DNA of 64,000 nucleotides from Macrostomum lignano (lineage: Eukaryota): assembly GCA_002269645.1 (NCBI GenBank), contig NIVC01000848.1:1-64000 (forward strand), given 5' to 3'. The notes below the pieces were generated by a model. That model made no database searches. It saw nothing but the letters and a program-made list of their open reading frames with translations, and had not been told where the DNA came from. The position numbers and the translations under genes are program-made. This document shows, one piece after another, positions 6,000 to 62,484 of the stretch (positions are counted from its first letter, which is position 1; each line of letters opens with the position of its first letter).

Positions 6000-6119
6000 C
6001 TGAGGATTGCGAAAATGTAAAATGCGCGATTGAAAAATAGCTCGAAGCTTGCAGCAAACTACGATTCTAAGAAATAATGTAGTCTTTGTTTACAGGTGTT
6101 ACTCACTTTTATCGCTTTA

Positions 6120-6705
6120 TAGGTGTACAGATCCCAATACACCCCAGATTAGACACAGGTGCACAGAACCCAATACACCCCAGATTAGAAAGGTGTACAG
6201 ATCCTAACACACCCCAGATTAGACACAGGTGCACAGATCCCAATACACCCCAGATTAGACACAGGTGTACAGATCCCAATACACCCCAGATTAGACACAG
6301 GTGTACAGATCCCAACACACCCCAGATTAGACACAGGTGTACAGATCCCAACACACCCCAGATTAGACACAGGTGTACAGATCCCAATACACTCCAGATT
6401 AGACACAGGTGCACAGATCCCAACACACCCCAGATTAGACACAGGTGCACAGATCCCAATACACCCCAGATTAGACACAGGTGTACAGATCTTAATACAC
6501 TCCAGATTAGACACAGGTGAACAGATCCCAATACACCCTAGATTAGACACAGGTGTACAGATCCCAATACACCCCAGATTAGACACAGGTGTACAGATCC
6601 CAACACACCCCAGATTAGACACAGGTGTACAGATCCCAACACACCCCAGATTAGACACGGGTGTACAGATCCCAACACACCCCAGATTAGACACAGGTGC
6701 ACAGT
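6120..6705. repeat. 36 bp intronic minisatellite CAGATTAGACACAGGTGTACAGATCCCAATACACCC (last INTS1 intron)
   Basis: Period 36 (6251 to 6287), about 16 copies; same unit as arrays at 10.8 kb and 13.9 kb. Confidence 0.95.
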
Positions 6706-6750
6706 GCCTGAAGTGAATCTTAACAATTGAACACCTGAAGCTGAACCTAC

Positions 6751-9423: not shown

Positions 9424-9494
9424 CTGCAGTTGGCGGCGGGGAATGGGCAGAGATTGGGTTATGACTAGTGACGGTTTGAGCGACAATAGCGACG

Positions 9495-10295
9495 TTGCAT
9501 GACCGACACATGCATCAATAACATGACCGCCATTCCTCAGCAACATGACCAACATATTCAGCGACATGACCGACACATGCATCAATAACATGACCGCCAT
9601 TCCTCAGCAACATGACCAACATATTCAGCGACATGACCGACACATGCATCAATAACATGACCGCCATTCCTCAGCAACATGACCAACATATTCAGCGACA
9701 TGACCGACATATTCCTCAGCAAAATGACCGACATATTCCTCAGCAAAATGACCGACATATTCCTCAGCAAAATGACCGACATATTCATCAACAACATGAC
9801 CGACATTCAGCAACATGACCGACATATTCTTCGACAACATGACCGACATATTCATCAGCAACATGACCGACATATTCATCAACAACATGACCGACATATT
9901 CATCAGCAACATGACCGACACATTCATCAGCAACATGACCGACACATTCATCAGCAACATGACCGACACATTTATCAACAGCATGACCGACATATTTATC
10001 AACAACATGACCGACATATTCATCAGCAACATGACCGACACATTCATCAACAGCATGACCGACATATTTATCAACAACATGACCGACATATTCATCAGCA
10101 ACATGACCGACACATTCATCAACAGCATGACCGACATATTTATCAACAACATGACCGACATATTCATCAGCAACATGACCGACACATTCATCAACAGCAT
10201 GACCGACATATTTATCAACAACATAACCGACATATTCATCAGCAACATGACCGACATATTCATCAGCAACATGACCGACACATTCATCAACAGCA
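9495..10295. repeat. intronic minisatellite: 24 bp unit CATCAGCAACATGACCGACATATT plus about three copies of a composite ~66 bp unit
   Basis: Directly visible; fills INTS1 intron 10310-9424. Confidence 0.9.
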
Positions 10296-10310
10296 TAACT
10301 AACAACTTAC

Positions 10311-10668
10311 CTGTATAAGATCCAACAGGAAGTCGGGATCTCTGGACCGGCACAGACGCAATCCAATGCCGTACTGTGCATTGAGCTTGCGCAGCTGGTC
10401 AATAGCCCAGGCGGGTGGCTGCCTGGCTGGTCCGCAGGGCGCGCAGTCCATCAGCCAGCCGAGCAGCCTAGAGCTGGCCTCGGTGATGTCGGTGCCAGCC
10501 AGCTGCATCTCCAGTCTAACAACGCCAGTTTTCTCAGTTTCAAGAGCGCGCAATTCGCGCATTCGAACGGCATCGGCGCTGAGGCCCTCGCGGAGGAGCA
10601 GAGACTGACAAGGGAACTCGTACATACAGGTCATCACCATCTCTAGTAGGCAGCGCACTGTTGGGTAC
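10311..10668 (-). CDS. INTS1: Integrator complex subunit 1, internal exon
   Basis: Acceptor CATGCAG|G, donor CAG|GTAAGT; YPTVRCLLEMVMT and LCRSRDPDFLLDLIQ match INTS1 (YPTLKMLMEMVMT, LCRSRNPDFLLHIIQ). Confidence 0.92.
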
Positions 10669-10784
10669 CTGCATGGTTCGGCAACAGGTCAGATTCAAGT
10701 TACCATCGGTAAGTACTTAGCAACGATCCCATGCAGTGCGGAAAACACTTATGCTACTAGGATATTACACACTAGATTACGCCC

Positions 10785-11380
10785 TAGATTAGACACAGGT
10801 GTACAGATCCCAATACACCCCAGATTAGACACAGGTGTACAGATCCCAATACACTCCAGATTAGACACAGGTGTACAGATCCCAATACACCCCAGATTAG
10901 ACACAGGTGTACAGATCCCAATACACCCCAGATTAGACACAGGTGTACAGATCCCAACACACCCCAGATTAGACACAGGTGTACAGATCCCAACACACCC
11001 CAGATTAGACACAGGTGTACAGATCCCAATACACTCCAGATTAGACACAGGTGTACAGATCCCAATACACCCCAGATTAGACACAGGTGTACAGATCCCA
11101 ACACACCCCAGATTAGACACAGGTGTACAGATCCCAACACACCTCAGATTAGACACAGGTGTACAGATCCCAATACACCCCAGATTAGACACAGGTGTAC
11201 AGATCCCAATACACCCCAGATTAGACACAGGTGTACAGATCCCAACACACCCCAGATTAGACACAGGTGTACAGATCCCAATACACCCCAGATTAGACAC
11301 AGGTGTACAGATCCCAATACACCCCAGATTAGACACAGGTGCACAGATCCCAATACACCCCAGATAAGACACAGGTGCAC
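10785..11380. repeat. 36 bp intronic minisatellite (same unit as 6120-6705)
   Basis: About 16 near-identical copies, same orientation. Confidence 0.95.
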
Positions 11381-11417
11381 CGATGACAACAGCACAATCA
11401 GAAGTAAATGCACGCAC

Positions 11418-12113
11418 CTATCCCAGACCAGCCGGCCCAACGTATCGGGATTAAAGGCGGCCAGAAAGACCAGCGCCAGCGATGCAGACCAATAAGCCGG
11501 GGCGGAGGCGAACGCGGAGCCGCCAGCCAACAGCCGATCGTCCGGCTGCTGATAGATGCAGGCATCGAACAGGCTCTGAGCAACGTCGGGCCCGGCCGGA
11601 GCCGGACAGCAGTCGGACGAGACCAGCGCAGCGGCGGAACGGAACACCAAGTCGGAGGCCAGGTTAAGAGCTTCGAACGTCGGCTGTACCAGCCGGTCGA
11701 TGCCCAGGCGCAGTGCGGCTGTAATGGTATCGCTGTGCAGCGGCACCTCGGAGCAGAGCCGCAGCACCAGCTGCCTGTCCTGCTCAGGTGGCCAGTGGTC
11801 TGCCGGATGGTCCCAGCTGGCTGGCGGAGTCTCCGGCGGAGCAGGGTCGGGCACCGGCAGGAAGCAGGCCCGCCTGGCGAACAGGCTAAGCAGGGACGGC
11901 GGCAGTTGATCTTTTGGAAGCAGATTGGGCAGCCCGACAGCTAGCCAGTGCAGGGCTAGGCGGTGCAGCTTGGCCACGGTGGCGTAGTGCCGAGTGAGGG
12001 CCGGCGCTGGCTCGTCCGACTCTCGTCTGCGCGCGACAGCCTCACGCACTGCCGGCTGGGCGGCGCTGACCATCTGGCAGACGCAGAGCAGGTCTAGAAG
12101 GCTCTCAGCGTAT
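11418..12113 (-). CDS. INTS1: Integrator complex subunit 1, internal exon
   Basis: Acceptor CTCCCAG|A, donor AG|GTGCGT, phases 2/2; WPPEQDRQLVLRLCSEVPL and AAFNPDTLG match INTS1. Confidence 0.92.
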
Positions 12114-12244
12114 CTGGGAGTCGACGGTGGATGGGTTGAACGTTGAAATACAGAGCAAAATCTTAAGCAGTTGAATGAGACGGCCCTTAATAGCACTTAA
12201 CACCCGCCAGACCCAGACCACAATATCATCTACCTGTCCTCTGT

Positions 12245-13190
12245 CACCTCAGAGAACCCACACCACCACCAGGTTCCTCAGAGAACGCGCACCACTATCA
12301 GGTTCTTCAGAGAACCCACACCAACACAAGGTTCCTCAGAGAACGCGCACCACTATCAGGTTCTTCAGAGAACCCACACCACCACTAGGTTTCTCAGAGA
12401 ACCCACACCACCACCAGGTTCTTCAGAGAACCCACACCACCACCAGGTTCTTCAGAGAACCCACACCACCACTAGGTTTCTCAGAGAACCCACACCACCA
12501 CCAGGTTCTTCAGAGAACCCACACCACCACCAGGTTCTTCAGAGAACCCACACCACCACCAGGTTCCTCAGAGAACCCACACCACCACCAGGTTCTTCAG
12601 AGAACCCACACCGCCACCAGGTTCCTCAGAGAACGCGCACCACTATCAGGTTCTTCAGAGAACCCACACCACCACCAGGTTTCTCAGATAACCACACCAC
12701 TATCAGGTTCTTCAGAGAACCCACACCACCACCAGGTTGCTCAGAGAACGCGCACCACTATCAGGTTCTTCAGAGAACCCACACCACCACTAGGTTTCTC
12801 AGAGAACCCACACCACCACTAGGTTTCTCAGAGAACCCACACCACCACCAGGTTCTTCAGAGAACCCACACCACCACCAGGTTCTTCAGAGAACCCACAC
12901 CACCACCAGGTTTCTCAGATAACCACACGACCACCAGATTCTTCAGAGAGCGCACAACACCACCAGGTTTCTGAGAGAACCCCCATCACCACCAGGTTTC
13001 TCAGATAACCACACCACTATCAGGTTCTTCAGAGAACCCACACCACCACCAGGTTCCTCAGAGAACGCGCACCACTATCAGGTTCTTCAGAGAACCCACA
13101 CCACCACCAGGTTTCTCAGATAACCACACGACCACCAGGTTCTTCAGAGAGCCCACAACACCACCAGGTTTCTCAGAGACACCACAACAC
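12245..13190. repeat. 29 bp intronic minisatellite CAGAGAACCCACACCACCACCAGGTTCTT
   Basis: Period 29 (12482 to 12511), about 32 copies. Confidence 0.92.
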
Positions 13191-13242
13191 CAACTGCGCC
13201 TTAAAAAACTACACTGCCTACTCTGCCTCTTCCAGAACTCAC

Positions 13243-13718
13243 TGCCTGCGATGCTCCAACGGCAGAGACGCCACCCTAGAATCCGGAGGCAGCAGTAGCG
13301 ACTTGGCAAATGCCGGCAGACTAATATCGGCCTTCAAATGCCTATAGAGATCGCGCAACAGGCAACGCAGCTGATGCCGCCCGGTGTCCTGTACAAGCAG
13401 ATCGCGGAATATCGCAGCCAGTGCCCGACACGCGTCCTTACTAGTGTGTGTGTGCAGGGCCACCAATACGGCTGCATTATTGGGATTGCGTACGCCCGAA
13501 CTAAGCTCGTTAGCAACTACAGTAGCCAGCACCGCGCGCAAATTATCCGGATGCTTTGACACCAGCATACGAAGGCATTGCAAATAATGCGCGAATACAG
13601 CTTTATGCGATTTGAAGCGCAGCTTGTCAACTAGCCTAGAGACCACTTCGCAGTCGCGGGAGCCGGCTAGGGCTGTGCAGTTGCAGCAGACAGCTGTGAG
13701 CAGGTCCATGGCTTCGGC
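13243..13718 (-). CDS. INTS1: Integrator complex subunit 1, internal exon
   Basis: Acceptor TTATCCAG|GCC, donor CA|GTGAGT; NELSSGVRNPNN matches INTS1 NELSSARNPNN. Confidence 0.92.
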
Positions 13719-13844
13719 CTGGATAAATTGCAGTTCGAGATGTTTTATCATTTTTTAATTAATTAAATAATTTGTTCAAATGTTTATCTTTTGACAAGAA
13801 TGTGCAATTAGCATTTCACGTGACTCTGATGTCTGATGACACAA

Positions 13845-14345
13845 CCGTGCAGATCCCAATACACCTTAGATTAGACACAGGTGTACAGATCCCAACACAC
13901 CCCAGATTAGACACAGGTGTACAGATCCCAATACACCCTAGATTAGACACAGGTGTACAGATCCCAATACACCCCAGATTAGACACAGGTGTACAGATCC
14001 CAATACACCCCAGATTAGACACAGGTGTACAGATCCCAATACACTCCAGATTAGACACAGGTGTACAGATCCCAATACACTCCAGATTAGACACAGGTGC
14101 ACAGATCCCAATACACCCCAGATTAGACACATGTGTACAGATCTCAATACCCCAGATTAGACGCAGGTGTACAGATCCCAATACACCCTAGATTAGACGC
14201 ACAGATCCCAATACACCCTACATATTCCAATACACCCTAGATTAGACGCACAGATCCCAATACACCCTACATATTCCAATACACCCTAGATTATACGCAC
14301 AGATCCCAATACCCCACTGGTTAAACACAGGTGTAACAAATCCCA
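13845..14345. repeat. 36 bp intronic minisatellite (third array of the same unit; degenerates toward the donor)
   Basis: About 9 clean copies plus shortened, degenerate copies. Confidence 0.92.
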
Positions 14346-14376
14346 AATGCGAGCAGGTGAAATCTCGCAGACTCGC

Positions 14377-15371
14377 CTGTAACTTAGCCAGCTGCAACCA
14401 CATCTCCAACCGGTTGGCAGCCATCAATCGAATCTCTGAATAGCCAGCCGCCACAGTCATCAGCCGGATGACGGCCCGTTGAGCAGCTTCGCTAGATGTA
14501 GCCTGGCCGCGTTTCTGCAAAGCGTCTTTGACGCAGACAACAACTAGCTCTTCTAGCCAGTGCGGCTTCTTAGCGTAGCGCGGTTGAATTGCTGGCTGTT
14601 GCTGCTGCTGGCCATCTTGAACGCCGCTGCTGCCGCTCTGGGCCGAGTCATCGTCGCTGGCGGTGGCGGCAACGCTTACGCTAGTGTGCGTCTGCGGCAA
14701 CTCTTTAGTAGCGTTGCCGCGTGTGCCGCCAAAGGTGAACAAAGCATCAGCCGGTGTGGCATTGGGAAACGAAGCCTCCAGATTGCGCACCAGCCAGCGG
14801 CAGTCGGTCCGATCTACCCAGAATCTATCGCCAACCGAGTCTTCAACAAATGCCCGCAGGATTGAGTCCGGCCAGGCGTCCTGGTCGCGCAGAGCGGCAG
14901 TTAACAAGCCAACGCAGAGCATAGCGGCCGGCCGGGACACCTGATCCCGCTTGCGTAGGAACGAGCAAAGACCGTCAAATATGAATGGCCGAGTGAAGCT
15001 GGTGGGCCTGGACTTGGCCAGGTAGGCCAGGCTCACAGTCAGTATAGGCGGTAGGCGAGTCTTGCACGAGCGCAACTGTACAAGCGCTCCGCACAGGTGC
15101 ATCTCAGCTTGAGCTCGGGCATCCGTACTGCCGCGAGATTCCAGCTGTTCGACTGAGCGAACCAGCTCGGTTGGATCCACTGGCCAAGCGTTCGACTCGA
15201 AGCTGGCCTCCTTGGCGCCAGGCCGGCGCTGGCCAGCCAGCTGCGGCGCCCCGGATGGCGCCAGCCCGACTACAACTGGGGCGCCGCCGGCTGCTGCTGC
15301 TGGCGCTGGTGAAACTGTCGCGGCGCCAGATTTGCTGCCAAGTGCGTGAAAGCTGCCGCCGCTGCCGCCAC
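14377..15371 (-). CDS. INTS1: Integrator complex subunit 1, first visible coding exon (upstream exon not located)
   Basis: Acceptor ACATCAG|GT (phase 1); GSFHALGSKS, SLAYLAK, FVEDSVGDRFWVD and RLEMWLQ match the INTS1 N-terminus; ends at a GC donor CAG|GCGAGT. The six exons total 6200 nt in one frame. Confidence 0.9.
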
Positions 15372-17740
15372 CTGATGTTATAATTAAATATGCAAAGTAT
15401 TCAACCTTGTCACCTTTGGATTATTATTAACTTTGTAATAAAGTCTACAATAGTACAATAAGGTAAGCAACTCTAATTTCTCAGATTTTTTAACACATAA
15501 CGTGTTAAAGTTTCATATTGTCTATAAATCATATTTCTCCTTGGCATTTTAAGAATACTATTAATTCTCAATTTTTTAGTAACCTATAAATGTAAAATCT
15601 GCAGACTTACACAACTTACATATAGATGTGGTTATTATATTTGATTTTGAAATTTGAATTCAGACCCAAAATGCCATGTGACACTATGATTTTGATAGCT
15701 TTGAAATTTACTATTTGCTTTAAGTAAAACTGTATTTGAAAAATTAATGCTTTTGAATCAAAAAACCTTGCAAAGCTGAATACAGCTATCTAAAATATAG
15801 CAAAACTGAATGTTTTTTGTTTTTATAGCAGATACCCACCCTGATCTTATAATTTTTTATATCTTAGCTACTGTCTAATGTGGCTCACAGCTGATAGTAG
15901 GTTAGGTACCCCTGAACTAAGGCATCATAGGCACCACTTATGGCAGATACAATATTTTTATATTAGAAAATTTACAAGAAAACCTTTTTAAGGTTGGACA
16001 AATGAGTTACCTTATTTCATAATGCACTACAGGCATATCATAGCTACAGAATGGGTTTTTTTCTAGCATAGATGCAATGCAATTAAAGCTTATTGAGGTG
16101 CTTTATATAGTAATAGCAGCTATGTAGCTAAAGTCTTAGCTAAAAAGATAGCACTAACTATGAATTATATTTGATTTAGCTATCATATTAAAGTATTTCG
16201 TATTTTAATATATCAAAGAATATTATATTTTTTATTAAGTACTATTAAAAATAGTGTTGCCATTTTATTACTATTTAAACTTTTTTTTTCAAAATGCAGC
16301 ATTTAAACATAGTAGTTAATATAATAAGACTGTTGCCAATAGAAATGACTGGGTAAATATCTAGATTTAGTTTTTGAATCTTTTGAATCTATGATGCAGT
16401 TTATACTAAGTATCTTTGTTTAATTTTATCTCTTTATAATATTTATTATTTTTTTAAATTTATAACTACAGCTATGGGAATCTATAGAATGTGACTATAA
16501 TTATTATATTTCCTTAGTCATAGCCATAAGAGTAGCTATCTACTATAGGTATATCCATAGCTGCTGTAGGCACCTATTTGACCATATTAGCCATAGGATC
16601 CTATAGCCATAGCTATGGCAAAACACTAATTTTATGCCATTATTGTTTTTTTGCCAAAAATCCCAAATTGCCAAAGTTTATTTGGAATATTCTGTTTTAA
16701 CTGCAATTAATTTTTAATTAATTTCTAATTTTTAATTCAATTAATTTTTTATGTCTATGTACACTAATATGTATATTACACAATGTTTTAAATTGTCAAT
16801 TTTGAAATGTTAGTACCAGACTAGTGGTTTTGATATTTAATTTCAATTAGAAAAGTTAAAAAGTAAAAAAATGGTTATAATTCAAAAGATAAGTAATTCT
16901 ATAAGATTGCAAACATAGCATTTAACACATGTTTTTATAAAGATAACTAAATTCATCAATATATAAATTGTGTATTTCACTTTTAAGACCCTTTTCTAGA
17001 TTGCAAATTACTTCAATTCTAATACAAAAATCATTGAAATGATTAATTTTTCAATTTGACACTAAATATCATTAAGTTACAACTGAATCTAAACATTGTG
17101 TGCAGCCTATTTTGGTGAAAGAATTTTTGGTGCAAAAGTGAATTTTTTGGTTAAATAGATATACATTTTGGCAAAAGAAAGTGATTAGTTTGGCAAAAAC
17201 ATAGGCTACATATAATTACAAATATATATTTGGTAATTGAAGCTTTTAATAAATTATTCATTGCTGCAAATTATTTGCAGTTAGAAAATTTAAAAACTTA
17301 TGACTTACTAATAGCTATGTTATGTACATGCAATCTATTGATATACAATCAATAGATTAGGGATATAACAGTGTGGTTTTTTAGTTCCAAGTCCTAAAAT
17401 TGTGAGGAATTTTTCTAAACAAACCCTACTTGAAATCCTACTATAACAGAATGGCACCTAATAAAACAACTGAATTAAAATGCAAGTCTATGACAGAACA
17501 AAAAATGTTACAATAAAATTAGTCTTTATTATTATAAAGTTCATCATTTCTCTTTTAACTTTCTTCTAAAACAATAAAAACTCTTTACTAAAGCTTGGAA
17601 CAAATATTTTGCCAAAATGGTCAGCTTTAGACAAAATGGTCACTATAGTCAAGAAAGTAGTATATTTCACACAAAATTATGGTGCATACAAAGGAATTTT
17701 TAGCATACATGGCATACCACACTTAATGTATAGTCTATAA

Positions 17741-17815
17741 CAGTAGTTCTCAACCTGTGGGTTGCAACCGTCAGTGGGGTCATGTGACCATTTTCTAGAG
17801 GTTGCAGCACTAAGA
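17741..17815. mobile_element. orphan end of a Charlie-type hAT element
   Basis: CAGTAGTTCTCAACCTGTGGGTTGCAACC resembles Charlie/MER5-type termini; preceded by GTCTATAA (NTCTAGAN-like target); no partner end found. Confidence 0.4.
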
Positions 17816-17840
17816 AATGTGAGTATGTCATACTTAATGA

Positions 17841-18957
17841 TAGAGCCTAACCAGGATCCCAATCCCAACTTGGTTGGGACCCATGTGTTTTTTTCAGAAT
17901 CCCAACCATGTTGGGAATAAGTGTCAGGAGTCAGGAAAAGTCAGGCGGGATTATAAAAAGTTTTTAAATTTCAAGTATATCTTAAAAATCATTTAGAAGC
18001 AATTTTGAAAGGACTAACTGAGGCAAGTATGCCAAATTTATTCATTTAAATGAATCAATCAACTTACTCAAACAAAAAGTAATTGAAAAGCACAATTTTA
18101 TGCTAAAAGTGTTATTCAATCATTTATAATTATTGGAAATACTAACAAAATGAAAACTATAAAGTTATTGCAAAAAATATGACAATAGCCAAATAGGTTG
18201 AGGTTTGAAATTTACTGAGTATCAATTTTCATTCTACTTGACTACTCTTTTTTATTAGAGGCAGGGGGGTGTGTGTACCCTGGCACACTTTAAATGACAT
18301 TGACATTAAGTGATACACAACCGCGAGAGGCATTACTGCCCATTTTGCTGACTCCCCTGAGCAGGCATACAAGTGCATGGATATGTATGCAGGCACACAC
18401 TCACACTTTATTTTATTATTAGGCATGTACATTTCACTGTGCCTTGGGGGGGTTGGCTTTCAAGGCCATTAATTGCACGAGCAGAGCTAAGCCAAGATTC
18501 CAATTCAGCCCCAAATTAATAAGACTGCACTTGGAATCAAGCCTGGGTCACTGGCACATTAGATCCTGTGCTAGACTGCTAGGCTATGGCCCCCCTACTT
18601 GATTGCTCAACAAAACTTGACTTGAATACTCAGCTTGAACTCCCAAAGTTTTGTCAAGTATTCAGCTTGGCCAAAACCTGAGTTTGTCTAGGCTCTATGC
18701 TCTAGTAGCACTACAAGTAAATATACAAGTACAAGTACAAGTTAGACTAGTATAGTAATATCACTTGACTAATAATACTAATTAATACATATGCCTAGCT
18801 ATATATTATAATAATAAATGCATCTTTAACTATCCCATACCTAAATAATCCTGGATTCCAATGGTAGATCTTGATACTGATCCTAATCAATCCTAAGTCC
18901 TGACTTTTATGAATTTAATCCTGCCTAACCAGATTTTTCTATCCTGGTTGGGCTCTA
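17841..18957. mobile_element. non-autonomous hAT element (MITE), 1117 bp
   Basis: 17 bp TIR TAGAGCC(T/C)AACCAGGAT (16/17 match); perfect 8 bp TSD CTTAATGA at 17833-17840 and 18958-18965; inverted subterminal AAAGTCAGG motifs; no transposase ORF. Confidence 0.85.
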
Positions 18958-18986
18958 CTTAATGATGCATTATATTGATTGAAAAT

Positions 18987-19694
18987 TGGTGCATGACCAA
19001 GATGGCCACATACCAAGATGGCCACAGCTCGAAATGTTTAAATAAGTAATAATAAGACTAGGTTTACATATTTCACATATTTCCATTTGGTAGTAATTAG
19101 GGAAATAGACGTTATAATAGAATTTTAGGCTATCTTCTCGAATAATTCATTTAATTCTAACCCCCACCCCCCACCACCCTTGAATAGAGGGCAAAATAAT
19201 TCTGGAAATAATTAAACAAATGATTCGAGAAGATTGCCAAATTTTATTGCATCACAATTATTCCTTTTGGCCTTAGCTTTTATTATAGCCTGATCTAGGG
19301 GCTTATAGATATTTATCCACTACATAAGGCAAGTACAGAATACATATAAGGCACTACATAAGGCAAGCACAAAATAAATACCTTATTGCATATTTATCCC
19401 AATTTTTTACATAGCTAGCATTACCACTAAAAATGGTTTCTTGATAAACTAATAGTGATAAGATTTGATAGATGTAATGATAGAAAATATATTGGCATAA
19501 ACACTAAAAAAATATTAAAGTTTTTATGGAGGTAAAAGGCCTAAATAGTTTCAAATTTACTAGGCCTATTGTATCAGTATTTATGAATATGATTGATTAA
19601 ACATAATTATTATAAATATAACAATAGCTGAATTATATTGTTAATTAATGATGTTCTAGCTATCTTAGTGTGTGGCCATCTTGGTCTTATACCA
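18987..19694. mobile_element. non-autonomous DNA transposon (MITE), 708 bp, 6 bp TSD
   Basis: 24 bp TIR TGGTGCATGACCAAGATGGCCACA (21/24 match); TSD GAAAAT at 18981-18986 and 19695-19700. Confidence 0.8.
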
Positions 19695-21744
19695 GAAAAT
19701 CTTTGCTGCTGAGTCACTAAACCCATGATAAACAAGTTTGTTTAAAACAAATACAGATTTGGGGTAGGATTTTGAGAATACAAAATAAAACACATTTACT
19801 ACAGACAAACAGATATTTGGTCTTCGGAGAATTTTATAGAAAATACATTCAAAACCGGGTGATACTACTTACCGCCATGTGGTTTAATTCCACGCCTCAT
19901 ATTTACAGACATTATATCATTTGGTACACTCAATGCATTTTAAAGCCTGTGAACAAATCATTTGTATGTGTGTACAATTAAAAGAAGGTACAAATATAGT
20001 TATACTTCAATGTTGTCATAAAAGTACACAATTTTTATGCAAAGCGACAGGGAGTCACTAAAGACTAAAAAAATTAATTTGGCGCCCAAGAGGAGCGGGC
20101 TCCGACACGTATATTTATACTATTTTCATTAAAAGTTAAAACAAATTAAAATGTCAGTTAATAAGTAATCTAACCATTATTACTATTTTTACAGTAAATT
20201 AGCAACAAGACAACATAACTTAATAATGTATTATTTCGATACTTTTTGGGCTACTTTTTTAACGACTTTTCAAGAACCATGACTTCTCGATTGATCTTGC
20301 CATATTGTATTGCTATACACGGACAAGTGTAAGCAACGCGATTGGCAATTGCCAAATTCTACAGCTGTTTCGGATATTTATTTTTTCTTTTTTACGGAAT
20401 CCTAGCTATATGTATATTACGGTTCGAAGAGAAGCAACAAGCAATGCATTAACAAAGCTCTGTGAAATTCGTGTAGGAATTTCGTACATTTGATGCACTT
20501 ACACTAAGGACGACTGTAGTATAACAGGGGTTTATAGCATATAAAATATGCACTTTTCCCTGTATGAACTAAAAATTTAGACTGTCCATATAGAACCTAG
20601 ACTACTGATGAGTGTGTATTAATTTTTAAGAAATGCCTTTTTGCTGTAGCGCAGATATACATGTGTACATGTACATGTATACGGATTACCCATGCAGCTT
20701 ACCTGTAAGACGAGGAACGTACATGTATGCATGTACATTTTGGACTCCTGGATCGTCGAGATTAAGATGCTTAAACACGAAATGTAAATTACATGAAGCT
20801 CCATATATGCACTTACTTTTGTTCAAGTTATATCCGCTAATATAAATTATTTACACACTGTCTTAGCGTAAACTTATTTAGCAATATACCGGATGTGATT
20901 TCAGAAAACTTTAATGTGATTGATACATCACATTTAATTGTTCGTAATTTAATGTATAAAATTGATTAATGAGCTCAGGAAAAAAGAACTAATTAAAAAT
21001 GAAGCAACAAAAGTGACACGCAGACGATGACTGAGACTATCTTCTAATGCTAATGCTAACTTTATGGATGCAGGATGCAGTTAAAAAACACGCATAAACA
21101 AAGTAAGAGTAAAACTTTGCAGGAGGAAAAATTGAAATACGAGCGTATTGCGATTTAATGACTAGTTATGTGTATAAATAACATAGACAATATTTATATA
21201 TGTATACTTCAAGGCTCCAATTTCAGCTTGATCAATCTTAGTAATAAATGTCAAGGCAAAAATCTCATAAGATCTGAAGGAAAGGGGAGACTAGAACTCA
21301 AATATCACTTTACTGCAGCCTCGTTTAAAACTATTTTTGGAACTTCGAAGCTCAGGAGGTAAAAAATCATTCATTCAAAAAGGAACCACTAAATTATTTG
21401 AATAATAATATTTAAAACATTAGGATTACTGAATACGTATTAATATGCAACTAATAATTTAAACCATAAAGTTAATCGTAATACTAATTGTAAACCTGAA
21501 AAACAGGGATTTTCGATCAGTACATGTATTACAATAGTTTAAGTACTAAATAATACCATACATCAACATCAAAGTGGTGAATAGACTTCATTGTACATGC
21601 ATGCTCTACATGTAGATTTTGGACATGTGACAGCGGTTTGCTAATAATACTAAAATAACACCAATAAATTAACCAAGCCTATTGAAATTGCTTTCAACCA
21701 AGCTTAAATTATGATAAATTTTAGTTGAACAGTGACAAGTAACC

Positions 21745-22378
21745 TACTGACAAAAAACTGTGCTTATCTACTGACACAAAATTGTGCTTATCTACTGACA
21801 CAAAATTGTGCATATCTACTGACACAGAATTTTGCTTATCTACTGACACAAAATTGTGCTTATCTACTGACACAGAATTGTGCTTATCTACTGACACAAA
21901 ACTGTGCTTATCTACTGACACAGAATTTTGCTTATCTACTGACACAAAATTGTGCTTATCTACTGACACAGAATTGTGCTTATCTACTGACACAAAACTG
22001 TGCTTATCTACTGACACAGAATTGTGCTTATCTACTGACACAGAATTGTGCTTATCTACTGACACAAAATTGTGCATATCTACTGACACAAAATTGTGCA
22101 TATCTACTGACACAGAATTGTGCTTATCTACTGACACATAAATGTGCTTATCTAATGACACAAAACTGTGCTTATCTACTGACACAAAACTGTGCTTATC
22201 TACTGACACAGAATTGTGCTTATCTACTGACACAGAATTGTGCTTATCTACTGACACAGAATTGTGCTTATCTAATGACACAGAATTGTGCTTATCTACT
22301 GACACAGAATTGTGCTTATCTAATGACACAGAATTGTGCTTATCTACTGACACAGAATTTTGCTTATCTACTGACTGT
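21745..22378. repeat. 24 bp minisatellite TGCTTATCTACTGACACAGAATTG
   Basis: About 26 copies, starting about 70 bp 3' of the P450-like stop codon. Confidence 0.95.
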
Positions 22379-22450
22379 GTGTTAATTGAACAGACCTTGA
22401 AAATTGAAGTTCATAGATATCGCACACACAAACTGCAGCACTACAGTTGC

Positions 22451-22819
22451 TCACTCCTCAGGCACCTCCCGCCTAGCCGTATAGGCAAAGCTACCAGGCT
22501 GCTTGCCCGGACTCAGCCGGTACCTGAGCAGCACGCCTTGCACAAGCGCCGATGCCAGGGCCAGAGCGAATCGATAGAACGGCGACTTAGCATGGACGGC
22601 CTGCAACGGCGAGCCGGAGATGCCGCCGCCCTCCGGCTGTTGAGCGAACCTGTCCCAGTGCAGTTCGCCAGCCGACTGGAAGACCAGCGGGTCGCGGTTA
22701 ACAGCGTGCAGATTCACCGCCACGCAGGAGCCCATGGGCAGCAGGCAGCCGGCGCACACCAGCTCAGCTGTGCTCAGAAATACCGCCGTATCGCTGCCAA
22801 TATCTTCTATGCGGATTAT
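22451..22819 (-). CDS. cytochrome P450-like protein, exon 4 (K-helix, meander, degenerate heme loop, L-helix)
   Basis: Acceptor CTCTGCAG|ATA; with exon 3 gives EE|IIR (ExxR); LLPMGSCVAVNLHAVNRDP...WDRF matches GxxIPkGtxVxxNlxaihRDP...PERF; heme loop reads PLQAVHAKSPFYRFA with no Cys; TGA stop. Confidence 0.82.
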   Translation of the reverse strand: MIRIEDIGSDTAVFLSTAELVCAGCLLPMGSCVAVNLHAVNRDPLVFQSAGELHWDRFAQQPEGGGISGSPLQAVHAKSPFYRFALALASALVQGVLLRYRLSPGKQPGSFAYTARREVPEE

Positions 22820-22909
22820 CTGCAGAGTTTGCCGCGGTTGCTTTTTAGGGATTAGATTAGTGTCAGTTCTCTCTCATATCCTTTGTCTGCTCCAACCATG
22901 CCTTAGGAT

Positions 22910-24240
22910 TCTGCATTCCCTATCCCTCAGAGGCTTCATTCCCTATCCCTCAGAGGCTTCATTCCCTATCCCTCAGAGGCTTCATTCCCTATCCCTCAGA
23001 GGCTTCATTCCCTATCCCTCAGGCTTCATTCCCTATCCCTCAGAGGCTTCATTCCCTATCCCTCAGAGGCTTCATTCCCTATCCCTCAGGCTTCATTCCC
23101 TATCCCTCAGGCTTCATTCCCTATCCCTCAGAGGCTTCATTCCCTATCCCTCAGAGGCTTCATTCCCTATCCCTCAGAGGCTTCATTCCCTATCCCTCAG
23201 GCTTGATTCCCTATCCCTCAGAGGCTTGATTCCCTATCCCTCAGAGCTTGATTCCCTATCCCTCAGGCTTCATTCCCTATCCCTCAGAGGCTTGATTCCC
23301 TATCCCTCAGGCTTCATTCCCTTTTCCCTATCTCTCAGGCTTCATTCCCTATCCCTCAGGCTTCATTCCCTATCCCTCAGGCTTCATTCCCTATCCCTCA
23401 GAGGCTTCATTCCCTATCCCTCAGAGCTTGATTCCCTATCCCTCAGAGCTTGATTCCCTATCCCTCAGAGCTTGATTCCCTATCCCTCAGAGGCTTGATT
23501 CTCTATCCCTCAGGCTTCATTCCCTATCCCTCAGCTCAGGCTTCATTCCCTATCCCTCAGAGGCTTGATTCCCTATCCCTCAGAGGCTTGATTCCCTATC
23601 CCTCAGAGCTTCATTCCCTATCCCTCAGAGGCTTCATTCCCTATCCCTCAGAGGCTTCATTCCCTATCCCTCAGGCTTCATTCCCTATCCCTCAGAGGCT
23701 TCATTCCCTATCCCTCAGGCTTCATTCCCTATCCCTCAGGCTTCATTCCCTATCCCTCAGAGGCTTCATTCCCTATCCCTCAGAGGCTTCATTCCCTATC
23801 CCTCAGAGGCTTCATTCCCTATCCCTCAGGCTTGATTCCCTATCCCTCAGAGGCTTGATTCCCTATCCCTCAGAGCTTGATTCCCTATCCCTCAGGCTTC
23901 ATTCCCTATCCCTCAGAGGCTTGATTCCCTATCCCTCAGGCTTCATTCCCTTTTCCCTATCTCTCAGGCTTCATTCCCTATCCCTCAGGCTTCATTCCCT
24001 ATCCCTCAGGCTTCATTCCCTATCCCTCAGAGGCTTCATTCCCTATCCCTCAGAGCTTGATTCCCTATCCCTCAGAGCTTGATTCCCTATCCCTCAGAGG
24101 CTTGATTCTCTATCCCTCAGGCTTCATTCCCTATCCCTCAGCTCAGGCTTCATTCCCTATCCCTCAGAGGCTTGATTCCCTATCCCTCAGAGGCTTGATT
24201 CCCTATCCCTCAGAGCTTCATTCCCTATCCCTCAGAGGCT
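22910..24240. repeat. 23/21 bp intronic minisatellite (AG)GCTTCATTCCCTATCCCTCAG with a ~610-630 bp higher-order duplication
   Basis: Period 23 (22921 to 22944); rare variants recur at 23321/23950 and 23531/24138. Confidence 0.93.
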
Positions 24241-24271
24241 TCGTTTATTCATTCCCCCACTCCTCTCAGAC

Positions 24272-24571
24272 CTCTTCCAGTGCAGCCTCAACGCTGTCGT
24301 TGTCGGCCACGCTGACCGCGGCAAAGAACTGGTCGGGTGCAGCGGCCACCCGAACAAGGCAGGCGTGCACCAGATCGGGCACAATGGCCAGAGACAAGCA
24401 GGCAAAGTCCAGCGCCTCCTGAACCATGTGATTGGCCGTGACAAAATCTGTGTCGGTGATGCCGCACTGATCGAACGACATTTTCTCTTTGATGAAGCGT
24501 TCAACGAAGCTGGGCACGCTGCGATCTACCAGGTTATTGTGCGTGTCGCTCATGAAGTGGTCCAGAAAGTC
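24272..24571 (-). CDS. cytochrome P450-like protein, exon 3 (G-H-I-J helices)
   Basis: Acceptor GAACTCAG|GAC, weak donor GAG|GTCTGA, 300 nt, phases 0/0; DRSVPSFVERFIKEK resembles CYP2 dpxxPrDFIDxfLxe; the I-helix lacks AGxxT. Confidence 0.78.
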
Positions 24572-24629
24572 CTGAGTTCGATTGGTTGCAGGGGGTGTCG
24601 TATAGATATATAGAGAGCTTGTGAATTCA

Positions 24630-25765
24630 AATACAAGGGAAAATAGAAGGGAGAGAAGTATGAAGGGAGAATATGAAGGGAGAGAGGAATGATGGCCTGA
24701 AAGGATAGAGGGATAAAGGGATAGATAAAGGTAGGGATAAAGGGAGGGATGAAGGGAGAGAATTGAAGGGAGGAATGAAGGGAGAGAGGAATGAAGGGAG
24801 AGATGAAAGGAGAGAGGAATGAAGGGAGAGAGGAATGAAGGGAGATAAGAATGAAGGGAGAGAGGAATGAAGGGAGAGAGGAATGAAGGGAGAGAGGAAT
24901 GAAGAGAGAGAGGAATGAAGGGAGATAAGAATGAAGGGAGAGATGAAGGGAGAGAGAAATGAAGGGAGATAAGAATGAAGGGAGAGAGTAATGAAGGGAG
25001 AGAGGAATGAAGGGAGAGAGGAATGAAGGGAAAGAGGAATGAAGGGAGATAAGAATGAAGGGAGAGAGGAATGAAGGGAGAGAGGAATGAAGAATGAAGG
25101 GAGAGAGGAATGAAGGGAGATAAGAATGAAGGGAAAGATGAAGGGAGAGAGGAATGAAGGGAGAGAGTAATGAAGGGAAAGAGGAATGAAGGGATGGAGG
25201 AATGAAGGGAGAGAAGAATGAAGGGAGATAAGAATGAGGGGAGAGATGAAGGGAGAGAAGAATGAAGGGAGATAAGAATGAAGGGAGAGAGTAATGAAGG
25301 GAGAAAGGAATGAAGGGAGAGAATAATGAAGGGAGAGAGGAATGAAGGGAGAGAAGAATGAAGGGAGAGAAGAATGAAGGGAGAGAGTAATGAAGGGAGA
25401 AAGGAATGAAGGGAGAGAATAATGAAGGGAGAGAGGAATGAAGGGAGAGAGGAATGAAGGGAGAGAGGAATGAAGGGAGAAAGGAATGAAGGGAGATAGG
25501 AATGAAGGGATGGAGGAATGAAGGGAGAGAAGAATGAAGGGAGAGAAGAATGAAGGGAGAGAGTAATGAAGGGAGAGAGGAATGAAGGGAGAGAGGAATG
25601 AAGGGAGAAAGGAATGAAGGGAGATAGGAATGAAGGGATGGAGGAATGAAGGGACATGGAAATGAAGGGAGAGAGGAATGAAGGGAGAAAGGAATGAAGG
25701 GAGATAGGAATGAAGGGATGGAGAAATGAAGGGACATGGAAATGAAGGGAGAAAAAAGAGAAAGG
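24630..25765. repeat. purine-rich 16-17 bp intronic repeat GAATGAAGGGAGAGAG
   Basis: Directly visible; source of the SLHSSLPSFLSPFI repeat ORFs. Confidence 0.93.
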
Positions 25766-25865
25766 GTGAAAGAAGGGAAGAGGGAAGACAGAGAAGAAGA
25801 AGCAATAGAAAAAAAGTGACGCAGTACTCAAAATAGCCCAATGCGAAATCTGACTGAACTCTCAC

Positions 25866-26299
25866 CCGGATCTCGCCGTGCAGATCCTCCTGCAGTCGGT
25901 GCATTCTGTTCCCGTCGCAATTGGGATTGAGCAGGTGAGCGGAGCGGAAGAAGGCCATGTACTTGTCCAAGATGCTGTCCAACTGCGGCTGCAGGTCATC
26001 GCACAGGTCGGAGCCGCCGAACACGGCGTCCAGCAGGTAGGCTCGGACGATGCCGGACACAACCGACTCGTCAATAAACGCGCTGGCGTTATCGGCCGAG
26101 ACTTTGCTGTCTGCATTGTTGCCGTCGCCGTCGCCGTCGCCGCGTAGCCGGTCGCCAAGGCAGGCGAGCGCTTCGTCAACGCAGTTGCCAAGCAGAGCGT
26201 GCGAGTGCAGCAGATCGTCCACTGCGAATCGCGAAAGCAGGCCGACAACGCGGAGCTCTTCGTAGTTCAAAGAGTACACCGTTGTGGCCTTCCAGTCGT
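25866..26299 (-). CDS. cytochrome P450-like protein, exon 2 (C-F helices)
   Basis: Acceptor CCCCCCAG|AC (phase 1), donor CGG|GTGAGA (phase 0); WK at the C-helix position and IVRAYLLDAVFG at the E-helix (VFG) position. Confidence 0.78.
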
Positions 26300-26354
26300 C
26301 TGGGGGGAGGGGGACGGGAGATAGATAATTATCATCACCACTGTCCTGATTATA

Positions 26355-26700
26355 GCTTATCATCAGCATAATCATCATCATAATAATCATAATCATAATC
26401 ACAATTATCATCATAATTATCTTCATAATCATAATAATAATAATAATCACAATTATCATCATAATTAACATAATCATCATAGCTAATAAATATTATCATC
26501 ATCATAATCATCATAATCATCCTCAAAATCATCATAATCATCCTCAAAATCATCATCTTAATCATAGTTACTCGTATCATCATAATCATTATCACTATCA
26601 GAATCATCATCTTTATCACAATTATCATCATAATCATCATAATCATAATAATAATAATCATCATTATCATAATTATCATCATAATAATCATAATAATCAC
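26355..26700. repeat. (ATC/ATA)n low-complexity intronic microsatellite
   Basis: Directly visible in P450-like intron 1. Confidence 0.9.
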
Positions 26701-26775
26701 CAGGTCTTTACAATCGTAAACAACACCAGGCAATTTTTATTACACAAAAGGTTTGGATACTCGCCGATTACTCAC

Positions 26776-27151
26776 CAAAGGCCAGGTGAGGCCTTGCATA
26801 AATCAGCTTGGAGGTGAATGCAGAGCTATAAACCACATCAGCTTGGCTGACAACAAACAGCCAGTCTCGTCGCTTATTAAATTCAACCAGCACGAATGGC
26901 TCGGTGAACTGGCGCAGGAATTCCCCAAGTAGCAGACTGGTTGGTGTCACCCGACACACTGTTGCCATTGGAAACCTCACATTCTTGCGCGTAATATACC
27001 AGGCAGTAAAGAATAATAAGACCAGAAATAGGGCTAGAATGAAGAGTACTTTAAGCAGAAAATCACTGGACTTGTTGTTTGAGAACACGCCTTCATATTG
27101 TGGCCTGTAGTCCTCACTAGTGAAGGTCTGAGATGGCATACCATTCTCCAT
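26776..27151 (-). CDS. cytochrome P450-like protein, exon 1 (N-terminal membrane anchor, beta1, RP motif)
   Basis: ATG at 27151; hydrophobic anchor FLLKVLFILALFLVLLFFTAWYI followed by basic RK; LIYARP motif; donor TTTG|GTGAGT, phase 1. Exons 376+434+300+369 = 1479 nt = 492 aa + stop. Confidence 0.78.
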
Positions 27152-29789
27152 TGTTCAAGTTTTTTAGCATGAAAGAAAAGGAAGATTGATTGGTTAGGCA
27201 ATGATATTTCACTTTAATTTTTAAATATAAAAAACGAAAAAGGTTGTTTAAAACTCTAAAAATCTTTAGCAAATATTTTTAGCAGAATGAATGAAAAAGA
27301 AAAAAGAAAAACAAGTTTAAAGAAAAACAAAGTATTTTTTCTTTTTGACACACTAACTTCTAACTATAAAATTGGTTGTTCTAATCTTGACTTATACTAA
27401 TTGATATAAATAATAGTATCAAAATGATTATTACATTCATTTATAAAGGAAAATTTGATTTACAAATAATTCTTGCATAATTTTTATCTTTATAAACAAC
27501 TAACTTTACTACGTCATAAAAGTATAAAAGTCAAAACTTCAACGACAACTATTTGTATTAAGTATTATTTACTTTTATAGTTACTGGATATAAAAAATAA
27601 AGTGCGCAGACAAAAAATGTCTTGATTTCAAATCATGCACTGACAATAACATCTAAATATGAATAAATATGATATATCCATTTATAATAATGAGATCTTC
27701 TGACTTATTGTTATTGACTAAGCATCTATAATTTACAAAAGCATGACCTTAGTGCACTATAGTATAAGGTAGCAAGCAGCTTTTCGTATGCTTTCATAAT
27801 TCTATTTCAATGAACTAAAAATTAAACAGAAAAAATTTTATTACAATTGTGACTCAATATGCATGATCGCCATTTTTAAAGACATAAAGTTATACGAAAA
27901 TATAAATACATTCAAATTATCGTTAATAATGCAATTTCGCCTCATTTTTTAGTTCTGTCAAGTACACACTAACGTTAAGTCAATATTAACATATTTTTCT
28001 GTTGTATAGAATTAGTTTTTCTCCAAAAACTGTAAGAGTGAGATAAAATATTTTGTTAAGTCTTACAAAACGTTTGAACCGAAAGCCGGTACCCGAAAGT
28101 TTCTTAAATCTACGGAAACAATTTGAAGCATTGCTAATTTAAAATAAATAAATAAAGTACGCACGTAAGATTTTTGGCTGGAACACTTCAATAAACAATA
28201 AACTTATTCTGGAGCTACATATGTTGTCTAATGGTTTCGCACAAAAATGTTATTCTTGCTTGATTGTCAATGTTAAATAACTCAATAATCATGATACACG
28301 TACATATAGCCTTTTTAGTTGGCAACGACATTGATTTTGCATTGTCAATAGACTTTATACATGCAAGAGCTTCCAAAAAGAATTAAATTCTATTTACTAT
28401 TTACATCTATACCAATCAAACAGCCTTACTCTTTAGAAGCAAATGAAAGAAACACTTCAATCTGATTTTATAAGTGTGCAGTGGGTCACTTATTTATGCA
28501 CCACGTACGTACATGTACAAAGATGAGGTAAAATTATTTCGGTCTGAAATTGCGAGAGTACAATATACGGAATAATGAATTTAAATCTGTTAAACAGCCC
28601 AACAAAGTAGGAAAGGGACGACCGTTGCACACTAAAAAACGTTTTAATTCTAGTCCAGAAGCTGCATGGCCGACTAGAACTGGGAGCTTCTCTAACTAAG
28701 AGGAGAGGTCGATCAGAGACTTTGAGGAGAGCGAGAAGAATTGGAAGCGATACAGACAACATGCGAGCTTTAAGCCTTGATCTTTCACTGCTTCTTGTTG
28801 CCACCTGCCACTGGCTAAGCAGCTTTTTAGGCCCCTAGGTATTAACAGCAGAGAAGCTCCAGCGAGAGAAGATGAGTCGGGGATTGGGAGTTGGGGATAA
28901 TTGAAAGCTAAACCACTCAAACGATTGATGACTTTGCTAAAAAGAGGGGCGAAATGAGATATGGGATATATATGTTAAAGAGAGGCAATAAGGGGGCGGG
29001 CGTACAAGACAGTGGATCCCTTAGAGAGCAAAGTGAATTGAGGAGGATAGGGGAAGTGGGGGGGGGCTGCCGACAACTCAGCAACGTGCCGCGAAGCTGA
29101 CTCAGTTTGGGGAGAGGCAGGAGGAGCAGATGCGATGAAGCTCAACCGGAGACTGAGAAAGCAAGGGGTGGGGGGGGGGAGGAAGACACGCGGACACCTG
29201 GCTGGCTGCTGGTTTAGCCTCTACTTAAAACTCTTTGATCTGTAATTTGCTGAAGTAGCAACAATTCAAGATTAAATGTCTGTCTTACCCATCTATCCCC
29301 TTCGCTCCCCTGGCCTACTCGTAATAGGCTGATCTCAGAGAGCTGAGTGCTTTTAGTCGAATATCATCCAGCTGAGTCCTATCAGGGGGGGGGGCATCAC
29401 TGCGCAGAACTGTTATTTAACGCGAGGCCATATCGGCGCTGGCTTTTTTGCCTGTTAAAGCTTTCAACTCATCATCATCATCTGCCTAATAGAGACTTAA
29501 TTCCCAGCTGCGATTGTAGTTTTTAAAAAGGCTTGTCGGATTAGACATTGTGCGAGATGCGGGGGCTGCAATATTTTATTATTCCCTAGTGCTGGAGCTC
29601 AGGTGCACATCGAATCTCGCCCTTCCCCACGCCCTCGAAGTGACCAATTATTTGTTTGACCGGCCTCTCGCAGTTAGTGGCTGCCCCCCCCCCTAGTTCA
29701 TGCTTTTTGTGCCAAAATAGGCCTTCTGGCTGGGCAAGTTATAATTTGCTGAATTTGAAAGCTGAGTTGCAGATTTTTAGACATAGACA

Positions 29790-49056: not shown

Positions 49057-49549
49057 TGAATTTGAACTTCTGTGCAAGCGAGTTGGCTGGCTGCCTTGCT
49101 GGTCCTGGCGAAACTCTCTCTCTCTCTAAGTCTTTCTTTTCTCTTTGCAACTTTTAAGCGACAATTTTTATTCTCCTTTCGTGGAGCCAAACCCCCCCAC
49201 CCCGCCCTCCTGCCTACTCACCTTGACGCAACAGTGGACTCCCCACCCCATGCTCAGGCTTCCCACCCCAGCCCCTGAGCGAGGCCGGCTGCCATTGGTC
49301 CAGAGAAGGGTGGCTGACGGCAATCTTACCCGGGTGGCGCTTCTCAGGATGCGCCGCTTCGGAGCGAATGAGCTGTGAGCTCCGAATTTCCCTGGTGGAG
49401 CTAAATTAAGCCGGTTTGATAAGCGGACAGACTTGGATTTGAAACGCTAATAGACATGCTTTGGAGAAAAGCAATCGGTCTCAGATTGCAGAATGCATCT
49501 GGGTTAGGCTTTTACGTACCAACAAAGCACTTCTTATTGATTTCCTCTC

Positions 49550-51355: not shown

Positions 51356-51924
51356 TCTCTAAGCTCAATCCCTAGCCCCAAGCCAGCCTACCTTTTCTCT
51401 CTCCCTGTCACAGCCATACTCAGAGCATTTCCAATAACCCCGAAAGCGCTTCATAATTGAATTAGCTCACCTATAAGCCAGGTGCCTGTCGTGCCATAGC
51501 AAAAATTAACAAATTGTCAATTTGTAGCACAAGGTGATAAATTGGTGCCAATTAGCGACCCAACCAAAACTCTTACTAAAAATAGAAAACTCGTGGCATA
51601 ATGAATTCTCACAATTAGGTGAGAATTTGTTGTGTTGAAATTGTTTTTTTTAAAAGCTTGAACAGAACAGGACTGGCTATGAAAATAGCAACAGGTCATT
51701 GTTGTTCACGAGGCCAAGTTGCTAGGTTAAGTTTATCTATTAGCGTAGTGCAAATTCAATTGAAAGCATAGAGATGATTAGGTGCTAGAGAACAATACAA
51801 AAAGCTTTAGTTATGCCTCATTTAGATTTGCTATTCAATGCTCAATGTTTATATAGTTTGGTGCGATACAATGGAAATGTAGGACTATTTGGTTTGGAAT
51901 CTTAATTTTAATGGGGAAGCCTGC

Positions 51925-59051: not shown

Positions 59052-59094
59052 CTGCGGAAAGCAACCGGGAGGTTTGGGAATGATGTGGCTTGGA

Positions 59095-59970: not shown

Positions 59971-60021
59971 AAAAACACAAAATACGAGTGGTTTGAGAGA
60001 AAAAATAAATACAAAACTCAC

Positions 60022-60684: not shown

Positions 60685-60745
60685 CTGAGGGGATTGGCGT
60701 GGATGAGAGGCTGTTGGCGATTCCCGTGTAAGCTCAGTTCCTTGT

Positions 60746-60966: not shown

Positions 60967-60972
60967 GTTTCA

Positions 60973-62484
<1,512 letters not shown>

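Follow-up and report, generated by a model that had tools for sequence, protein, structure and literature searches.

A membrane-anchored relative of the cytochromes P450 in the flatworm Macrostomum lignano whose heme-thiolate site appears to be lost

Can an animal keep a gene descended from the cytochromes P450 (CYPs) once the residues that hold the heme have been replaced, and, if so, as what kind of protein? The question is raised by a four-exon gene of Macrostomum lignano (assembly GCA_002269645.1) that lies on the minus strand at positions 22,451 to 27,151 of a stretch of 64,000 nucleotides (positions 1 to 64,000 of contig NIVC01000848.1, hereafter the window) and encodes a protein of 492 amino acids with a Ser at the position of the axial Cys, a residue long regarded as obligatory in P450s. 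Our results support a gene that is transcript-annotated, intact and of P450 descent, and the alignments support the loss of its heme-thiolate site, at four positions of the Cys pocket and at the β1-4 Arg. The reading that we favor, with a probability of roughly 0.55, is that of a membrane-tethered, non-catalytic protein of the P450 fold, which would function through binding to a partner or to a hydrophobic ligand.

The four exons (Table 1) are joined in phases 1, 0, and 0 across GT/AG borders, giving 1479 nt, or 492 codons, with a single stop, at the end. Their translation is 100% identical to the GenBank protein PAA76018.1/PAA76034.1 (P0002, the M. lignano P450-like protein) and two residues off PAA76028.1 (P0001), and hence the in-phase, four-exon model of 492 amino acids proposed in a first-pass annotation of this DNA, made from the sequence alone, is borne out. 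The GenBank annotation of the assembly draws on RNA-seq (StringTie/TACO) as well as a de novo transcriptome, and TransDecoder called its open reading frames (ORFs) (PMC5730564). Because this transcript-based coding sequence is identical to the model, the splice junctions are present in assembled transcripts, including that of the weak GAG|GTCTGA donor of exon 3, at the start of intron 3, which is the same in all three copies of the gene. Read-through at this donor (window 24266-24274) adds a Val and then a stop, and two older UniRef gene models (P0003 and P0004) terminate in ...EEV precisely there; retention of intron 3 would yield a product of 371 amino acids devoid of the K helix and of everything beyond it. 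The first-pass annotation had also considered that transcripts might splice differently and restore an FxxGxRxC motif, for which there is no motif to draw on: regular expressions, strict and loose, retrieved no heme-motif pattern from the six frames of positions 19000-28500, and the strict form occurs nowhere in the window. Nor did the window, or the DNA flanking the paralogous loci, contain a second P450-like sequence.

The P450 ancestry of the protein was approached with several methods, among them the profile hidden Markov model search that the first-pass annotation had called for. With the Pfam p450 profile (PF00067) the protein passes the gathering score, marginally, at 23.7 bits vs 22.8 (E = 2.4e-5), residues 219-431 being aligned on profile positions 158-391. 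A phmmer search against all PDB chains returned P450s only, with a best E-value of 0.0017 over the region from the K helix to the meander, and when a profile of the flatworm protein and its closest relative (P0005, described below) was used instead, the PDB matches improved to 1.6e-6 and the alignment reached back into the I helix. The comparison by hhalign with a canonical bacterial CYP (P0006) gave a probability of 96.5%, over just 69 columns. Run exhaustively against 1.84 billion representative proteins, phmmer produced three sequences at E <= 0.001, namely the flatworm protein itself, P0005 (508 amino acids, E = 3.3e-13) and P0006 (5.6e-5). Judged by these searches, the flatworm protein is a real but remote relative of the P450s, and the strongest P450 similarity in the gene falls in exon 4. 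With residue 219 aligned on position 158 of the Pfam profile, the start of the P450 domain is to be expected near residue 60, just past the membrane anchor, an arrangement that would fit a microsomal-type architecture. Word-indexed searches with the flatworm protein, P0005 and their profile returned the queries alone, and scans of JGI metagenome contigs for further relatives gave no match.

The closest relative, P0005, is an uncharacterized P450 of 508 amino acids from the ENA metagenome assembly ERZ25070786 (contig ctg124097l; L003 190-1716). It is the sole match better than 1e-10 among the 1.84 billion representative proteins, is about 26% identical to the flatworm protein, and scores 49.9 bits with Pfam p450, which makes it a clear member of that family. 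The two proteins are collinear over their full length, beginning with an N-terminal motif and continuing past the anchor as far as the C-terminus, and they have in common the Y-x-G-V-F-S...D-F-x2-K-V motif, the anchor itself, ExxR, W-x-R-F and an I helix without the acid–alcohol pair. Conservation is highest at residues 18-60 (40% identity), followed by residues 371-432 (34%), the other segments showing 22-25%. Unlike the flatworm protein, P0005 keeps the heme-thiolate signature (PFSIGSRKCPA) and the β1-4 Arg, has a 27-residue insert ahead of the Cys pocket and is encoded by an intronless gene. With its Cys kept and no Thr in the I helix, P0005 may use peroxide or work as an isomerase-type P450. 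The contig of P0005 is eukaryote-like, with nucleotide-sugar-transporter fragments divided as if by introns, and its proteins are all singletons in a collection of 15 billion proteins; no synteny was found between this contig and the window.

In the pairwise MAFFT alignment, PLQAVHAKSPFY (residues 441-452) lies opposite PFSIGSRKCPAQ of P0005, with K-S-P on K-C-P, and L442, V445, A447 and S449 stand for the F, G, R and C of FxxGxRxCxG, all four of which P0005 has. This independent alignment agrees with the first-pass annotation, which had placed a Ser at the Cys position and had reported the loss of the pocket Gly and Arg from an ungapped register, and in it the Phe is replaced as well. A three-way MAFFT alignment that included the bacterial CYP misplaced the Cys pocket, and we therefore used the pairwise alignment to P0005 together with the hydrophobic pattern of the L helix, which remains in register with P0005 after the pocket. 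The alignment to CYP105AS1 suggests an alternative register, EGGGISGS440 against FGGGIHQC, in which it is again a Ser that falls at the Cys position. Whatever the register, the flatworm protein has no Cys beyond residue 402, which lies ahead of the meander. Functional CYPs are recognized by the axial Cys within FxxGxRxCxG; the flatworm protein reads PLQAVHAKS449PFY instead, and at least two substitutions separate its TCG codon from a TGY Cys codon.

The heme site has also been altered at the β1-4 Arg, an additional loss that the first-pass annotation did not contain. This Arg (Arg299 in P450cam) anchors a heme propionate, and its place is taken by F384. Together with A447, for which P0005 and P0006 have Arg or His, F384 (Arg in both) leaves the flatworm protein without two of the residues that usually anchor the propionates. 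In the I helix, the profile alignment sets LSLAI opposite the AGHET/AGxET of PDB P450s, in agreement with the earlier observation that the AGxxT motif had been lost, and no (A/G)Gx(D/E)T is present. P0005 carries GGQPL at the same position, which suggests that a normal oxygen-activation site may have been absent from this P450-like family from the start; the loss of the I-helix motif alone is not decisive, CYP74, CYP5A and CYP8A being without it too. As for the C helix, in which WKATT had been read as a WxxxR that lost its Arg, the alignment to P0005 places it perhaps ~13 residues past WKATT, where no Arg is evident either. The residues that are retained include those that stabilize the P450 core. 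ExxR runs from E370 to R373 and is reassembled by the splice between exons 3 and 4, and E370, R373 and R427 of the meander align with the E-R-R triad of solved P450s, of P0005 and of P0006. The block AGCLLPMGSCVAVNLHAVNRDP and an L-helix-like stretch are also retained, and the alignments to PDB P450s and P0005 uphold what had been claimed for all three elements.

Having lost the ligand, the Gly and Phe of the pocket and two of the propionate anchors, the protein is unlikely to bind heme. It is most probably heme-free and, as predicted from these residues, cannot perform heme-thiolate monooxygenase chemistry. We propose that it descends from a membrane-anchored cytochrome P450 of an otherwise almost unsampled family and that the lineage leading to M. 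lignano lost the axial Cys (now Ser449), three more residues of the pocket (Phe, Gly and Arg) and the β1-4 Arg, while ExxR and the meander Arg, the block from the K helix to the meander, the L-helix-like stretch, the anchor and the juxtamembrane motif were retained. The role would be non-catalytic, by analogy with bacterial heme-free P450 homologues such as EryCII, and the putative location would be the membrane of the endoplasmic reticulum (ER), by analogy with microsomal P450s. We infer its residence in the ER, how its N-terminal half folds and its role in binding or scaffolding. The anchor is the sole segment that AlphaFold predicts confidently, as a helix with a predicted local distance difference test (pLDDT) score of 87-88. 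Before it and at its start, and not in the P450 core, lies the stretch best conserved with respect to P0005 (QYEGVFSNNKSSDFLLKVL vs KYIGVFSESHSTDFIIKVC), and the presence of ~30 residues ahead of an anchor is unusual among microsomal P450s.

Proteins of this kind have been described in bacteria, and the concept is less new than the first-pass annotation held, since heme-free P450 homologues are established as the non-catalytic PDGAFs (P450-derived glycosyltransferase activating factors), such as EryCII and DesVIII, which have a P450 fold. EryCII has no Cys and no heme but preserves helices I, J, K, K' and L as well as the C-terminal sheets, its N-terminal half has been remodelled, and the surface that meets the partner enzyme is provided by an addition at the N-terminus (PMC3391682). 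A total of 301 PDGAF-like sequences and 880 non-canonical CYPs (ncCYPs) in 20 families (A-T) have been counted, all of them bacterial (PMC11703216). The flatworm protein resembles the PDGAFs (TIGR04515; PDB 2YJN) in the loss of the axial Cys and the conservation of the C-terminal core, whereas the PDGAFs, unlike it, are bacterial, soluble and encoded beside a glycosyltransferase partner. Membership in that family was rejected at 19.1 bits, vs a TIGR04515 cut-off of 343, and no glycosyltransferase neighbor was identified among the gene calls of positions 12451-37151 and ten further long ORFs of the window that were scanned. The loss of the Cys is independent of that in the PDGAFs and convergent with it. 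Among animal enzymes, only those of clan 2 appear in the top PDB profile matches, at 25-27 bits; these microsomal CYPs (CYP1A1, CYP1A2 and CYP17A1) share with the flatworm protein the N-terminal anchor and a similar length, but the likeness is weak, extends from the K helix to the meander and is equalled in score by bacterial CYP105/107-type proteins. They also have a proline-rich hinge, WxxxR, AGxxT and FxxGxRxCxG, none of which is recognizable in the flatworm protein. The resemblance to the CYP2 clan noted in the first reading of the sequence was neither confirmed nor refuted. No case of a P450 homologue without the axial Cys from an animal or another eukaryote was found in the literature (open-access subset).

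Whether the gene is still maintained is the point on which the best of the alternatives depends, namely that it is transcribed but dead, an inactive P450 drifting neutrally in a highly duplicated genome in which no stop or frameshift has yet arisen. The M. lignano assembly is redundant and polyploid (PMC5730564), and such massive redundancy would relax selection. The orphan status of the protein (one relative better than 1e-10 in 1.84 billion proteins), a Pfam score that barely exceeds the threshold, the low-complexity GDGDGDG insert and the weak donor of intron 3, with an in-frame stop immediately after it, would also agree with a dead gene. However, three copies of the gene are found in M. 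lignano, on contigs NIVC01000846, 847 and 848, and the 492-codon ORF is intact and all six splice sites are identical in 3/3 of them; the exon borders and the TCG codon are common to these three separately assembled contigs. The coding sequences of the copies differ at eight positions, six synonymous and two nonsynonymous (G479D and D184G, the latter in exon 2 of the copy L004), which corresponds to an omega of ~0.1 with 353 synonymous and 1123 nonsynonymous sites. The 6:2 split has a binomial probability of 0.003, which becomes 0.027 when the model admits transitions alone (only transitions were observed). GC content by codon position is 0.62/0.39/0.70, vs 28-33% in intron 1 and the flanks, and the relative synonymous codon usage correlates with that of a verified exon of the adjoining INTS1 gene at 0.85 in frame and at 0.15 and 0.09 in the shifted frames, so that codon usage and three-base periodicity are those of a conserved neighbor. 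Furthermore, five heme-site positions have changed with zero disabling mutations, that is, at least five separate replacements have accumulated in a reading frame that stayed open, and the N-terminal family motif and the ExxR/R triad have been kept. The intact ORFs and splice sites, the excess of synonymous changes and the normal codon usage argue against a decaying pseudogene. Thin as it is, this evidence favors a gene maintained as coding, and we regard the dead gene as rather unlikely.

A second alternative accepts that the gene is maintained and holds that the protein is a native hemoprotein with a ligand other than Cys, Ser449 (or His446) ligating the heme as alkoxide or imidazole in an active non-canonical CYP of altered chemistry. 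Whichever of the two candidate registers is used, the aligned axial position is indeed occupied by a Ser, and the view of the first-pass annotation, in which Ser ligation was known from engineered P411 variants, is outdated, as a native Ser-ligated CYP that keeps heme and the typical fold, P450-G9 (PDB 9CJG), has been described (PMC11703216). In addition, P0005 keeps the Cys yet is without the I-helix acid–alcohol pair, and the family may use an unusual, non-monooxygenase chemistry. The likeness to P450-G9 lies in the Ser at the aligned axial position (S449, or S440 in the alternative register), but in P450-G9 heme and fold are kept, whereas the flatworm pocket is otherwise degraded too. The Ser is not an isolated change: L, V, A and F have replaced, respectively, the Phe, Gly and Arg of the pocket and the β1-4 Arg, which takes away two of the usual anchors of the propionates as well as the Gly by which the loop can pack against the heme. 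Kinship with the Ser-ligated ncCYP family G was also considered and rejected, since the similarity to 9CJG is non-specific, this structure standing below some 55 ordinary CYPs (E = 0.43, or 6.6e-4 with the profile). We consider a Ser- or His-ligated hemoprotein improbable.

An artefact of annotation or assembly, in which FxxGxRxCxG would be restored by another exon or frame, or a sequencing error would account for the Ser codon, is very improbable, for although intron 3 has a weak donor and the older models P0003 and P0004 differ, the frames scanned hold no heme pattern, the junction of exons 3 and 4 rebuilds ExxR collinearly with the intronless P0005, the TCG codon and the exon borders repeat in three separately assembled contigs, and the annotation was built from transcripts.

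Several points nevertheless weigh against a membrane-tethered, non-catalytic P450-fold protein. AlphaFold2 gave models with a mean pLDDT of 41.4 (single sequence) and 35.6 (three-sequence alignment), and Foldseek with the single-sequence model returned nothing at E <= 0.001, just noise at E > 2. We infer the P450 fold of the chain, sequence support being limited to approximately residues 219-470; for residues 60-218, the N-terminal 160 residues of the domain, no sequence method detects similarity to anything. Searches of proteins and metagenome contigs found no orthologue from another named species. The signal of selection consists of eight substitutions and speaks for the very recent past only, and the copies between which it was measured may be homeologues or haplotigs. 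Heme could yet find a ligand in Ser449 or in His446 close by. Finally, the identifiers Mlig016456, Mlig014502 and Mlig006003 appear in no searchable paper, nor in the supplements of two M. lignano expression papers. Of the constrained, non-catalytic protein put forward in the first-pass annotation, the intact gene and the loss of the heme site have held, while the absence of heme is still deduced from sequence only.

The consequences depend on how much of this reading is accepted. If the gene is maintained without a heme site, metazoans, too, would have turned the P450 fold to non-thiolate or non-catalytic uses. It is possible, though we put it forward tentatively and at less than even odds, that this is the first animal P450-fold protein, conserved, expressed and membrane-anchored, without heme-thiolate chemistry (either heme-free or with a non-Cys ligand), and that it is both a derived member of an unrecognized CYP family with a juxtamembrane motif and a non-catalytic binder of a partner or ligand at the ER; if true, this would be an independent, eukaryotic reinvention of the PDGAF role known from actinomycetes. 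Inventories of flatworm CYPs based on Pfam counts would list the gene as a P450 enzyme, which is almost certainly wrong. RNA interference and in situ hybridization are established in M. lignano. Transgenesis is established as well (PMC5730564), which makes the function of the protein directly testable in this animal.

Table 1. Features of the P450-like gene and its introns (positions in the window; residues of the 492-amino-acid protein)
Feature	Position	Strand	Remarks
Exon 1	26776..27151	-	376 nt, ends in phase 1; ATG 27151-27149; N-terminal 125 amino acids
Exon 1 content: pre-anchor motif and membrane anchor	26776..27151	-	tblastn with P0005 matches here
Family motif Y-x-G-V-F-S-x3-S-x-D-F-x2-K-V, residues 18-36	27044..27100	-	Alignment to P0005
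Predicted membrane anchor, ~residues 30-53, FLLKVLFILALFLVLLFFTAWYI	26993..27064	-	Maximum Kyte-Doolittle 19-residue mean 2.87 at residue 31
Exon 2	25866..26299	-	434 nt; contains WKATT and low-complexity GDGDGDGNN insert
16-nt minisatellite filling intron 2	24770..25752	.	Array length varies between copies
Exon 3	24272..24571	-	300 nt, phase 0/0; I-helix region; last residue is E370 of ExxR
I-helix equivalent, residues 318-340, HMVQEALDFACLSLAIVPDLVHA	24362..24430	-	Profile alignment to solved P450s, opposite LLGAGHETTA
23-nt minisatellite filling intron 3	22914..24242	.	Related to the intron-2 array, in inverted orientation
Exon 4	22451..22819	-	369 nt with TGA stop; K helix, β1-4, meander, degenerate Cys pocket, L helix
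Phe384, site of the β1-4 Arg	22778..22780	-	Column F/R/R in P0002/P0005/P0006
Meander W425-D-R-F428, PERF equivalent	22646..22657	-	Supplies the Arg (R427) of the E-R-R triad
Degenerate Cys pocket P441-LQAVHAKSPFY-452	22574..22609	-	Pairwise MAFFT vs P0005 PFSIGSRKCPAQ
Ser449, axial-Cys position	22583..22585	-	Codon TCG; same in all three copies

The introns of the three copies differ by hundreds of bases through minisatellite expansion, intron 2 measuring 1223, 1294 and 1197 nt and intron 3 measuring 1648, 1452 and 890 nt. The arrays of introns 2 and 3 form 205 inverted pairs across exon 3, with 72-77% complementarity over 26-37 nt. A strong hairpin around this exon is not supported, as there is no exact seed of 10 nt and the complementarity is weak; pairing across exon 3 could favor its skipping or back-splicing, with the same weakness of complementarity in mind. 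Another array, of ~26 repeats of the 24-nt unit CTACTGACACAGAATTGTGCTTAT with 93% identity, occupies positions 21744-22375, beginning 76 nt past the stop codon, in the presumed 3' untranslated region or intergenic region.

The downstream neighbor on the same strand, ~2.5 kb from the stop codon of the P450-like gene, is INTS1 (Integrator complex subunit 1; ~4998-19912, minus strand), whose Pfam domains are distributed across successive exons (RP2B-binding, INTS2-binding, R3 and R4). The adjacency to INTS1 is repeated at the paralogous locus L001, and the gene listing of L004 shows no INTS1. No gene was called in the 10 kb upstream of the P450-like gene. Most of the long ORFs of the window are stop-free minisatellite arrays, many of them between 30000 and 64000. 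One of these, at 49456-51375, consists of a 22-nt unit repeated 75 times and reads as a Pro/Ser/Leu-rich "protein" of 639 amino acids with a GC skew of -0.74, and the array of intron 2 is itself open in frame with exon 2 (ORF 24627-26480). ORF length by itself is misleading in the M. lignano genome. Toward the end of the window, ORFs of the minus strand within positions 58801-62451 encode an MBT repeat at 60970-62451 and a SAM domain at 58801-60039, which suggests an L3MBTL/Scm-like chromatin reader gene broken up by minisatellites.

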